DNA from: Blastocystis sp. Blastoise
Lineage: Eukaryota; Protista; Bigyra: Opalinata
Length of the DNA stretch: 64,000 nt
Assembly (NCBI GenBank): GCA_039096225.1
Contig: JBBPEB010000027.1
Location: 248,001-312,000 of the forward strand
Reading direction: 5' to 3'
Below, piece after piece: positions 10,901-13,900 of this stretch (position 1 is its first letter; every line of letters begins with the position of its first letter). The translations under genes were made by a program, and so were the position numbers. The notes beneath the pieces were generated by a model. The model was not told the origin of the DNA and did not search any database. It saw only the letters and a program-made list of their open reading frames with translations.

Positions 10901-13900
10901 TTTATATATAAATATATATTACATTGGAATGAAGAAATGCCTTTTTGTTTTTTAAATAAATCTAATGAATTAGAATTATTATTAAGATATATGAATGGAT
11001 ATGATGAGGATAATAATCGTATATGCCCTCCTCATTGTAAATGTATGGAACATCCACACGGGGGAATCACAGAAATACCAACTTTGGTTAATATATTAGA
11101 AAATGTAGATAGACATAAAGAAGAAGAAAATGATTATTATAATATATATATAGATAAAGAAAAAGGATTTCATGGTGAATATGAAGAGAATAATCATAGT
11201 ACTATAGATAAAAACATAGAAATAGATATAAATAAAGATAATAATAGTGTTTGTTCTGTTATTGTAGAGAATAGTAATGATGCAATTATTGATATTGATA
11301 GTAATAATGCTACTAATAATGATCATGATGATATTGATAGTTTTACTACTTCAATTGTTGGAAATCATGTTCCTATTACTACTGATACTAATAAGGATAA
11401 TGCTGTTAATAATAGTGATAATAAAGATAATAATAGTAATAGTAATAATAATAATGTTACTATTAATAATAAGGATACTATTACTATTAGTAATAAGGAT
11501 GATAAAGGGAATAATAATAAACATAATAATAATAATAATAATATTACTACAAATAGTTCTACTACTACTATTAATAATAATGATAATATTACTAATAATT
11601 CTACTACTATTAATAATAATAATTCTACTAATACTAATAATTCTACTACTAATAATAATATCTCAAATAATACTAATACTAATAATTCTACTACTACTAA
11701 TAATAATATCTCAAATAATACTACTACTCCTTCTTCTCAGTTAAATAAAGAAGTCAAACAAGAGATTATACGTCGTATTCCTTATAAGATTAAGTCGATT
11801 TCAGACACATTTCAGCTTTCTAAGAAATTAGCTTCTCAATTGAATCAAATTCCTTATCCATTTATATATTGTCCTGATATATTAAATACAGAATTACAAC
11901 ATATATATAATACTATTGAGGATTATATATTCTTTGTTGCAGATTTTGAATCTATTATTGTAACAAGAAAAACAGTATTTCCTTGTGAAGTAGGAATAAC
12001 TGCGTTTTCTTTTAAACGTGGGATTGTAGATCATTATCATGCTTACATATTCCCGCGGGTAATTCCAGATGATCAAAAAGGATTAATTTATCATCCTTAT
12101 AAGAATATACATGGTATATATTATAAAGGATATTCATCTCTTTCTAAACCATCATGGATTGTAGGACAAGAGATTTTATTATTTATTCAGAAATATTCAG
12201 ATATTTCTAGTCGATGTATAAATAGTTCTATTGTTCTTCCTCCTTTATTTATTAAGGGAACGGATAGTCACATAGGATTTGATGCTCGTTGTTTCTATGA
12301 TTTATTTATACCTCAAGAAGAAGATCAAGAAATATATAAAGAATATAAATGTCAACATCAAGATATATGTGCGTCATTGCCTACACTCCCTGCGTCATCA
12401 CAAGATCTTAAACCTATTTCTTTATGTGGTGTTTGGAATGTGATTCATTTATATTATTATATACGATTTTATACACATATATTGATTAATATTCCATTCA
12501 TAACATTTACTGATTTAGAAGGATGTAATTTAGGACCTCATTATTATGATAATAATGATAATAATAATAATAATAATAATATGACAGATATTAAGAAGCC
12601 AAACAATCCTATTGGTTTTCATTATCATTGTGCTCTAGAAGATGCAAATGTATTGGCTGAAAACTTAATTCAATATTTTAAAATAACATATTATCGTGAT
12701 TCAAATAATCGATTTACACATCGTCAAGTTGATGAAACAATTAAATATATATATAAACCAGATCAAGTAGAATATAAGAAGGAATATGGAGAAATGGAAG
12801 AGAAAAGAATGGTTAATGTGATGTCTAATGACCAATCAAATGATGAGATCTGGAGCCGTTATGAAGTTGAAAAAAATAAAAAGAAAGATAATAAAGGTGA
12901 TGGTATTATGAAAGATAATAATAATGATGATAATGATGATAATGAAGATAATAATGGTGACAATAAAGATAATAATAAAGATAATAATGGTGATAATAAT
13001 GGTGATAATAATGGTGATAATAAAGATAATAATGTTGATAATAATAATAATAATAATAATAATAATAATAATAATAATAATAATAATAATAATAATAATA
13101 ATAATAATAATAATAATAATAATAATAATAATAATAATAATAATAATAATAATAATAATAATAATAATAATAATAATAATAATAATAATAATAATAATAA
13201 TAATAATAATAATAATAATAATAATAATAATAATAATAATAATAATAATAATAATAATAATAATAGTAATGAGAAAAATGATGAAATTAGAGATAATAAT
13301 AATATCTCAGATAATAATAATAATAATAATAATAATAATACTAATACTGATGAAGATATGCATTTAAAAACTGTTACTAATTCTTTATCGAATACTTCTT
13401 CTCTTGTTCCTATTCTAATAACTACTAATAATAATACAATTCTTCAATCAACTATTGATACTACTAATTCCACTATTATGACAACAAATATTAATGATAA
13501 AGAATCTTCTCCTGTTTCTCCTGTTTCTCCTTCAGTTGAGAATATTACTAATTCAAGTTATAGTACGACTACAAGAATTACTAATGATTTAATATCATCC
13601 AATAAGCCAATTATTGATACTAATGAATCTCATAATAATAGTTCGAAAGATAGAGTTCTATATAATCAGGATTTGAATCTTAACGAAGAGGAAAGATGTG
13701 CTAAAAAAGATGATCATAATCATTTATGTTCTTCAGATATAAATACGGATAATATTGCTATTCCACAAGTAGACCTATCTACTAATTTACAGAACAATAT
13801 TATTATGAAAGATAAATCAATAAATATCCAATTTGATACTACTATTAATAATCATAATGTTTCTAAAGATATATCAAATCAAATTATTGATATTACTGAT

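Follow-up and report, generated by a model that had tools for sequence, protein, structure and literature searches.

The window analysed here is the whole 64,000-nucleotide stretch of contig JBBPEB010000027.1 (positions 248,001 to 312,000, forward strand) of Blastocystis sp. Blastoise, an AT-rich sequence with a GC content of about 20-30%, and the element in question is a long open reading frame (ORF) in which RNase III-like sequence precedes a domain of the Maelstrom (MAEL) family. We propose, with moderate confidence, that this ORF belongs to the gene of a helicase-less Giardia-style Dicer-like protein with a MAEL-type DEDDh domain, for which we consider it most likely that it degrades RNA in the 3'-5' direction as an Mg2+/Mn2+-dependent exonuclease and is stabilised by a zinc site of the MAEL type. 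MAEL domains that carry both the DEDD and the ECHC residues are already known from protists and are active (EhMael; TbRIF4), and the domain itself is a further member of this group. What appears to be new is that a MAEL domain which is putatively competent as a nuclease is covalently joined to a Dicer-like core, as elsewhere these activities sit on separate proteins (TbRIF4, QIP, ERI-1).

The assignment of the region to the MAEL family is well supported, as Pfam, uniqueness in the genome, phmmer and the fold agree. The Pfam family PF13017 (Maelstrom) was matched within the ORF with 25-25.7 bits (E 1.1-1.8e-5), which is above the gathering cut-off of 22 bits, and a six-frame Pfam search of the 33.3-Mb genome returned this domain as the sole Maelstrom match (26.5 bits). 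A phmmer search of 1.84 billion representative proteins gave eight matches at E <= 1e-3, seven of which are PF13017 proteins with Pfam E values from 5e-8 down to 1e-80; among these seven are the amoebozoan protein P0005 (Rhizamoeba saxonica) and an HMG-MAEL-MAEL protein of a centipede. Word-index protein searches with the MAEL domain alone, with the entire ORF containing it and with alignment A1 remained blank and are uninformative on novelty, and no relative turned up in metagenome scans for which the MAEL domain and alignment A3 served as queries. A sequence search of the PDB with the MAEL domain likewise gave no match, the MAEL structures being recognised by fold alone. An AlphaFold2 model was built on alignment A1 (nine sequences), which reached a predicted template modelling score (pTM) of 0.68 and, in the beta-sheet core, values of 84-92 for the predicted local distance difference test (pLDDT). 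Foldseek ranked three MAEL structures first, with E values from 6e-7 to 6e-5: 5af0 of Bombyx (E 6e-7), 9nhs (a SIWI-Maelstrom complex) and 4ybg of Drosophila, followed by RNase T, ExoI, Pol III epsilon, 3'hExo and ERI2. VIA-align likewise placed the MAEL structures on top, with Z scores of 15.3 (Bombyx), 14.6 (Drosophila) and 14.2 over 206-216 residues, whereas all other DEDDh folds scored 11.8 or less (10.6-11.8 for RNase T, Pol III epsilon, 3'hExo, ERI2 and TREX1). The Maelstrom domain proposed in an earlier sequence-only reading of this DNA was thus borne out, its best structural match being MAEL rather than a generic DnaQ/ERI exonuclease, and the domain retains D-x-E, a plausible ExoII aspartate and H-x4-D in the manner of the protist MAEL proteins that are competent as nucleases.

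The same reading had ascribed to the domain a full DEDDh catalytic set together with an ECHC zinc motif. A script located all the residues named for the catalytic set in frame, namely D11942 and E11948 (VADFE), D12281 (GFDARC) and the pair H12626 and D12641 (HCALEDA), as well as the motifs PCEVG (11981), NIHGI (12104), EGCN (12518) and FHYHC (12617). Their conservation was judged from the alignments A1 and A2 and an additional E-INS-i realignment with MAFFT. The ExoI residues D11942-F-E11948 lie in the predicted strand 1 (model residues 32-42, pLDDT about 84), and VADFE aligns with the IDFE of P0001, P0002, P0005, P0006 and P0007. The ExoIII residues H12626-CALE-D12641 are located at the N-terminus of the last helix (model residues 266-284, pLDDT 73-83), and HCALED aligns with the [FY]HCALxD of P0001, P0002 and P0005. 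In the metazoan-type protein P0004, the D-x-E, the histidine and the last aspartate have all been lost together (IYFN/IFFN; NCALS/YCALA), as one would expect of residues that act as a single functional unit. The ExoII aspartate is likely to be D12281, the aspartate in the FD of GFDARCF, and is the weakest of the DEDDh assignments: in the model it resides in the first turn of helix 146-155 after strand 4 (137-139), resembling an 'FD..F' arrangement, with a pLDDT of about 55 and a loop longer than usual, and D12263 offers an alternative. MAFFT aligned this stretch inconsistently, an instability caused by the 42-residue insertion (12305-12430) that follows it. Thus, D-x-E and H-x4-D of the claimed set are securely aligned and the ExoII aspartate is plausible, and the modelled placement of the residues, with the glutamate of PCEVG in strand 2, is the canonical ExoI/II/III (DEDDh) topology. 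The chance of finding D, E, D, H and D at five fixed columns was estimated from the background composition to be about 6e-7. As to the family as a whole, it has been published that protist MAEL domains retain both DEDHD and EHHCHC (Zhang et al. 2008; PMC2628886) and that EhMael is active (PMC4408791), which agrees with the earlier statement on protist versions, and the loss of the DEDD residues from animal Maelstrom, also stated there, is seen in P0004 and fits the inactivity of Bombyx Mael (PMC4408791).

A MAEL-type zinc site in the domain is plausible, too. In Bombyx, the ECHC motif comprises E137 in strand 2, C290, H293 and C302, the latter three being spaced C-x2-H-x8-C (Chen et al., PMC4408791). 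Of the corresponding candidates, E11987 (PCEVG) and C12629 (CAL) align cleanly with the MAEL family, and in terms of the EHHCHC signature (Zhang et al. 2008) the glutamate, both N-terminal histidines (HYHAYI, NIHGI) and the CAL cysteine are placed in invariant or near-invariant columns of A1, A2 and the E-INS-i realignment. The Cys/His pair of EHHCHC is present, but offset from the family columns. The best candidates are C12524 and H12539 (C230 and H235 in model numbering), which lie 29 residues before the last cysteine, since the loop is broken up by an Asn-rich insertion of 25 residues (12542-12616). The sequence-only reading had counted FHYHC among the Maelstrom-specific motifs; the ligand histidine is more likely that of GPH (12539) than any histidine of FHYHC, and H12626 of the latter corresponds to the general base of the DEDDh site.

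The part upstream of the MAEL domain resembles Dicer in a much more distant manner. Exon 4 of the inferred gene (Table 1), which would encode the N-terminal half of RNase IIIa, gave 18-19 phmmer matches in the PDB, all of them RNase III enzymes (best E 2.2e-3 to 3.5e-3), including Drosha, DCL4, Giardia Dicer, Dcr-1, human Dicer and bacterial RNase III. Its match to PF00636, with 15 bits and an E value of 0.04, stays below the gathering cut-off of 27 bits. At the level of motifs, which is statistically weak, the RNase IIIa signatures LEKVGD and KADLFES are present and the catalytic residues E/D/D/E intact. In the ORF that also encodes MAEL, PF00636 was matched with two stretches, to which the C-terminal half of RNase IIIa contributes (19.4 bits, E 0.0019). 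The signature of the RNase IIIb-like domain lies about 100 residues beyond the second motif of RNase IIIa, and the domain is recognised with 17.2-19.4 bits (E 0.009-0.002, profile positions 2-58) in the same register as RNase IIIa, and BLASTP aligns the two signatures (E 0.14). However, R10604 is found where an aspartate is expected and I10841 where a glutamate is expected (E..GR vs E..GD and D..I vs D..E in RNase IIIa), and RNase IIIb is probably non-catalytic, in which case the core may cleave one strand only. The spacings of the catalytic residues are 67 and 80 residues; they resemble the corresponding spacing of 73 in E. coli RNase III. Phmmer searches of the PDB with the RNase IIIb region, the C-terminal half of RNase IIIa and the connector in exon 3 retrieved nothing relevant, and a single-sequence AlphaFold2 model of the RNase III region (10220-11020) had a pLDDT of 34. 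Further upstream, the look-alikes of region 8401-9102 in a language-model comparison came from the clusters of Dicer PAZ and Dicer_platform (score 0.92; eight of the ten best named look-alikes fall in one family or clan), a lead of low recognition value. Pfam matched no family in this PAZ-like region or in exon 3, in which the by-eye motif QPLL...LIPSLC presumably recalls the PAZ-connector segment of Dicer, 'QPLL ... LxPELC'. [quoted passage not shown]

Taken piece by piece, the RNase III evidence is weak and below curated thresholds, yet the order, the spacing and the motifs fit together, and we judge the Dicer context to be real but degenerate. The tethering of the exonuclease to a Dicer core, as claimed earlier, stands insofar as RNase III-like sequence is found in the same ORF; the core itself has diverged strongly (E of RNase IIIa about 2e-3 to 4e-2), RNase IIIb is sub-threshold, and the failure to detect a helicase or dsRBD matches Dicers of the minimal type. 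Co-linearity is the firmest part of the tethering, since RNase IIIb, the second half of RNase IIIa and MAEL share the uninterrupted 7.8-kb ORF in AT-rich DNA. For the complete gene, a model of five exons (..7806, 7904-9102, 9307-9570, 9880-10074 and 10220-18091) was read from the DNA by means of in-frame GT-AG junctions, which yields four introns (7807-7903, 9103-9306, 9571-9879 and 10075-10219) and a putative protein of about 3900 residues; the exons were searched individually.

Table 1 Features of the putative Dicer-like MAEL gene in the window and Argonaute-related genes elsewhere in the genome (window positions unless a contig handle is given)
Feature	Position	Strand	Description
Inferred exon 1	5538..7806	+	Asn/Ser-rich low-complexity N-terminal region; start codon provisional; GT donor 7807, phase-1 junction to exon 2
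Inferred exon 2	7904..9102	+	Low-complexity stretch, then PAZ/platform-like region at about 8401-9102; splice sites read from the DNA
Inferred exon 3	9307..9570	+	End of the PAZ-like region and connector, ..DDQPLLY..AYLIPSLCCVAPF..; AG/GT boundaries, phase 0
Inferred exon 4	9880..10074	+	RNase IIIa, N-terminal half (SFTHSSY ... DQLEKVGDAIMEY); catalytic E 9955, D 9967
Start of exon 5	10220..10420	+	C-terminal half of RNase IIIa, KADLFESFLAMLY; D 10301, E 10310; acceptor AG 10218-10219, phase 0
Uninterrupted ORF	10262..18091	+	2609 codons (7.8 kb) in sequence of 22-25% GC; stop codon 18089-18091
RNase IIIb-like domain	10586..10900	+	RFEILGRSLRKY ... SLLDAYIACIYIG; E 10592, R 10604, D 10832, I 10841
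MAEL-type DEDDh exonuclease domain	11837..12721 (about)	+	Pfam, alignments, AlphaFold2 model
Low-complexity tail	12722..18091	+	About 1790 residues; continuous ORF
Piwi+PAZ (Argonaute) gene	C17:834961-836977		Pfam
Piwi+PAZ (Argonaute) gene	C26:479993-482069		Pfam
Lone PAZ match	C23:155017-155382		Pfam

If the protein acts as proposed, the RNase III core would cut double-stranded precursor RNA, the tethered MAEL exonuclease would then trim the 3' ends or remove one strand, and the single-stranded guide would pass to the Argonautes of the genome. By analogy to the systems described below, the most likely function, proposed with moderate confidence, is that the products of the attached RNase III core are trimmed at their 3' ends or relieved of the passenger strand. 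A nick-and-resect route to single-stranded guides is attractive because of RNase IIIb, if this is really dead. In such a scheme, which is speculative and which we consider rather improbable, a single polypeptide would make single-stranded guides in that RNase IIIa, as the one RNase III site that is competent, nicks one strand at a distance measured from the PAZ-like end, MAEL resects in the 3'-5' direction and Trp-rich clusters similar to Argonaute hooks recruit the Argonautes, and small-RNA maturation beside Dicer would have been the ancestral job of Maelstrom. The clusters concerned lie at 17471-17692, where nine of the 14 tryptophans of the ORF are found within 74 residues (binomial p about 2e-10), each flanked by S, N, D, E or G (SNW, SDW, DKW, SEW, GEW, RDW, HSW, MSW, NSW), and at 7722-7751, where STWDTNWNSW closes exon 1. 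Both resemble Argonaute-hook motifs of the GW/WG type and may serve as such, although a hook function is speculative. Trp-rich tails also terminate the RRM-MAEL proteins P0002 and P0010.

The protein can be compared to several known systems. EhMael of Entamoeba histolytica (EHI_192630) possesses DEDD and ECHC and is an Mg2+/Mn2+-dependent exoribonuclease, whereas Bombyx Mael, which lacks DEDD, is inactive (PMC4408791). Like EhMael, the ORF domain is a protist MAEL domain with DEDD(h) residues and a plausible ECHC-type motif, a likeness taken from the published description of EhMael; EhMael stands alone, whereas the ORF domain follows RNase III sequence in the large inferred protein and has two large insertions and the spacing C-x4-H-x29-C. 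TbRIF4, the MAEL homologue of Trypanosoma brucei (Zhang et al. 2008), is a DEDDh 3'-5' exonuclease which turns duplex small interfering RNAs single-stranded and associates with AGO1, and its function requires D294, D392, H472 and D477 (PMC3359990). TbRIF4, which acts in RNA interference (RNAi), and the ORF domain are both of the DEDDh type of the protist MAEL group, but TbRIF4 is a separate protein of 490 residues beside TbDCL1/2, whereas the putative exonuclease of the ORF is covalently joined to its Dicer-like core. Maelstrom of metazoans (Bombyx 5AF0, Drosophila 4YBG) is the best structural match and has PCE.G, YH.FI.P..IP, N.HGI and CAL in common with the ORF domain; unlike the ORF protein, it consists of an HMG box and a MAEL domain without DEDD, is inactive as an exonuclease and functions in the pathway of PIWI-interacting RNAs (piRNAs). 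With respect to the core, the minimal Dicer of the Giardia type (2FFL) displays the same order of PAZ (PAZ-like in the ORF protein), connector, RNase IIIa and RNase IIIb and has neither a helicase nor a dsRBD; it differs from the ORF protein, whose RNase IIIb is short of two catalytic residues and which in addition bears an exonuclease domain on the C-terminal side and very large stretches of low complexity. A DEDDh 3'-5' exonuclease as partner of Dicer or Argonaute in small-RNA maturation is also known from ERI-1 of C. elegans, which works in a complex with DCR-1 (PMC3213143), and from QIP, which acts with QDE-2 in Neurospora (PMC3359990). However, ERI-1 (SAP plus ERI type) and QIP are non-covalent partners from DEDDh subfamilies other than MAEL.

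The DEDDh-type MAEL genes whose surroundings were inspected (P0007 on contig L013; P0009 on L014/L015) encode RRM-MAEL or tandem-MAEL proteins without RNase III upstream, and therefore the RNase III-MAEL fusion is not general to DEDDh-type MAEL proteins. The gene on the metagenomic eukaryotic contig L013 (9540-10650) is an intron-rich RRM-MAEL gene in which D-x-E and the histidine have been kept and the last aspartate lost, and that on the metagenomic eukaryotic contig L014 (17-2367) contains tandem MAEL domains. Both genes suggest an unexplored family of protist MAEL nucleases with varied architectures.

Several observations weigh against an active exonuclease fused to a Dicer-like core. The alignment with PF13017 spans the N-terminal half only (profile positions 4-109 of 215), and the two large insertions named above break the MAEL domain. 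The mean pLDDT of its model is just 61.8, with values below 55 near the ExoII aspartate and below 50 across the Cys/His pair of the zinc loop, whose spacing (C-x4-H-x29-C vs C-x2-H-x8-C in Bombyx) is atypical. The fold match is not fully independent, because alignment A1, which drives the model, consists of MAEL proteins. The sequence establishes which domains are present, that the residues are conserved and that both parts are co-linear in one ORF, whereas catalysis, zinc binding, the substrate and the link to Argonaute are inferred. Two of the four catalytic residues are missing from RNase IIIb, which also stays under the Pfam threshold, so that the cutting of both strands is doubtful; the exon joins follow GT-AG sites and the reading frame; and the fusion is known from one genome. 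On the strength of the insertions, the zinc loop and the poor model near the ExoII aspartate it could be argued that the domain, like that of animal Maelstrom, binds RNA or serves as a scaffold without being catalytic, with the DEDDh-like residues as a relic, and metazoan MAEL indeed binds single-stranded RNA without cleaving it (PMC4408791). We consider this unlikely, since canonical residues occupy all five catalytic positions, hardly by chance given the above estimate, and since the catalytic residues vanish together upon functional loss, as in P0004 and partly in the gene on L013.

Two further explanations accept the exonuclease or leave it aside and question its connection to Dicer. In one of them, the exonuclease is active and the protein that carries it is no genuine Dicer, as a crippled RNase IIIb leaves double-stranded RNA nicked or merely bound and MAEL processes it from the nick or from 3' ends. 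The deviating signatures of RNase IIIb in the Pfam register of RNase IIIa and the failure to find a helicase or a dsRBD speak in its favour; however, the alignment of RNase IIIb is based on 17-19 bits and its register could be wrong, and very divergent yet functional Dicers exist, for example in trypanosomes (PMC3359990), so that we assign a low probability to it. The other is an artefact of the gene model, with the RNase III-like and MAEL parts on separate transcripts or genes, or with an RNase III similarity that arose by chance. It could appeal to the fact that every RNase III score is below the Pfam gathering threshold, to the pLDDT of the single-sequence fold and to a gene model read from the DNA alone. 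We nevertheless regard it as very improbable, because MAEL shares one uninterrupted ORF of 7.8 kb with RNase IIIb and the C-terminal half of RNase IIIa in DNA in which stop codons are frequent (22-25% GC), because 19 of 19 PDB matches of the RNase IIIa exon are RNase III enzymes and the residue spacings are RNase III-like, and because there is an independent PAZ-like signal upstream.

The fusion of a Dicer-like core with an exonuclease-competent MAEL domain, which we continue to favour, acquires additional weight from the remaining genome, which comprises 33,340,088 bases in 34 contigs; for tortoise isolates of Blastocystis, genome sizes of 26.0-33.3 Mb and GC contents of 21-23% have been reported (Lind et al., PMC12129017). 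Genes for Argonautes are present (Table 1). The six-frame Pfam searches, which take one exon at a time and may overlook split genes, detected no canonical RNase III elsewhere in the genome (best 17 bits) and no RNA-dependent RNA polymerase, and no paralogue of the RNase III region 10220-11020 was found in the genome. The protein of ORF 10262..18091 is hence the only Dicer candidate found in a genome that bears Argonautes.

Maelstrom is essential for piRNA silencing in animals, and its molecular role is still debated. A natural Dicer-MAEL fusion, if true, would be strong comparative evidence both that the ancestral role of the family is the processing of Dicer products and that exonucleolytic strand removal or trimming is integral to some RNAi pathways; a protein that nicks and resects in the manner outlined above would, if true, also provide Rosetta-stone evidence for an ancestral job of Maelstrom beside Dicer. 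No covalent fusion of Dicer and MAEL was encountered in the literature searched or among the database matches, a search from which the public protein annotation of Blastocystis lay apart, and the searchable literature yielded no description of a Dicer, Argonaute or Maelstrom of Blastocystis. The gene would open initial access to the RNAi machinery in this very common gut eukaryote and could guide the design of knock-down tools for it.

The low-complexity parts of the protein are dominated by asparagine, which accounts for 24.5% of the 2609 residues of the ORF and is encoded by AAT in 614 of 640 cases; poly-Gln is absent. Very long (AAT)n tracts encoding poly-Asn occur within the ORF, e.g., at 12924-13367, 14700-14900 and 15800-16260, and this low complexity recalls Plasmodium falciparum, although the genome is not that of Plasmodium, which is rejected because Piwi genes occur and AMA-1 is missing. 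A dictyostelid source is unlikely as well, given that no match to the cAR family, no poly-Gln and no canonical RNase III were found and that codon use is rich in ATA. Pfam matched no family in exon 1 or in the C-terminal tail. Elsewhere in the window, a three-exon gene at 1855-2870 (+) has a first exon which by eye resembles the splicing factor SF3A2, with the zinc-finger motif CKLCGTLH...HTQGRRHQ; the region 54478-57843 (+) encodes a protein of 1121 residues with an Ig-like He_PIG domain (E 5e-10); and an intronless gene for an alpha-galactosidase with Melibiase_2 (E 6e-77) and Melibiase_C domains is located at 58985-60166 (+).

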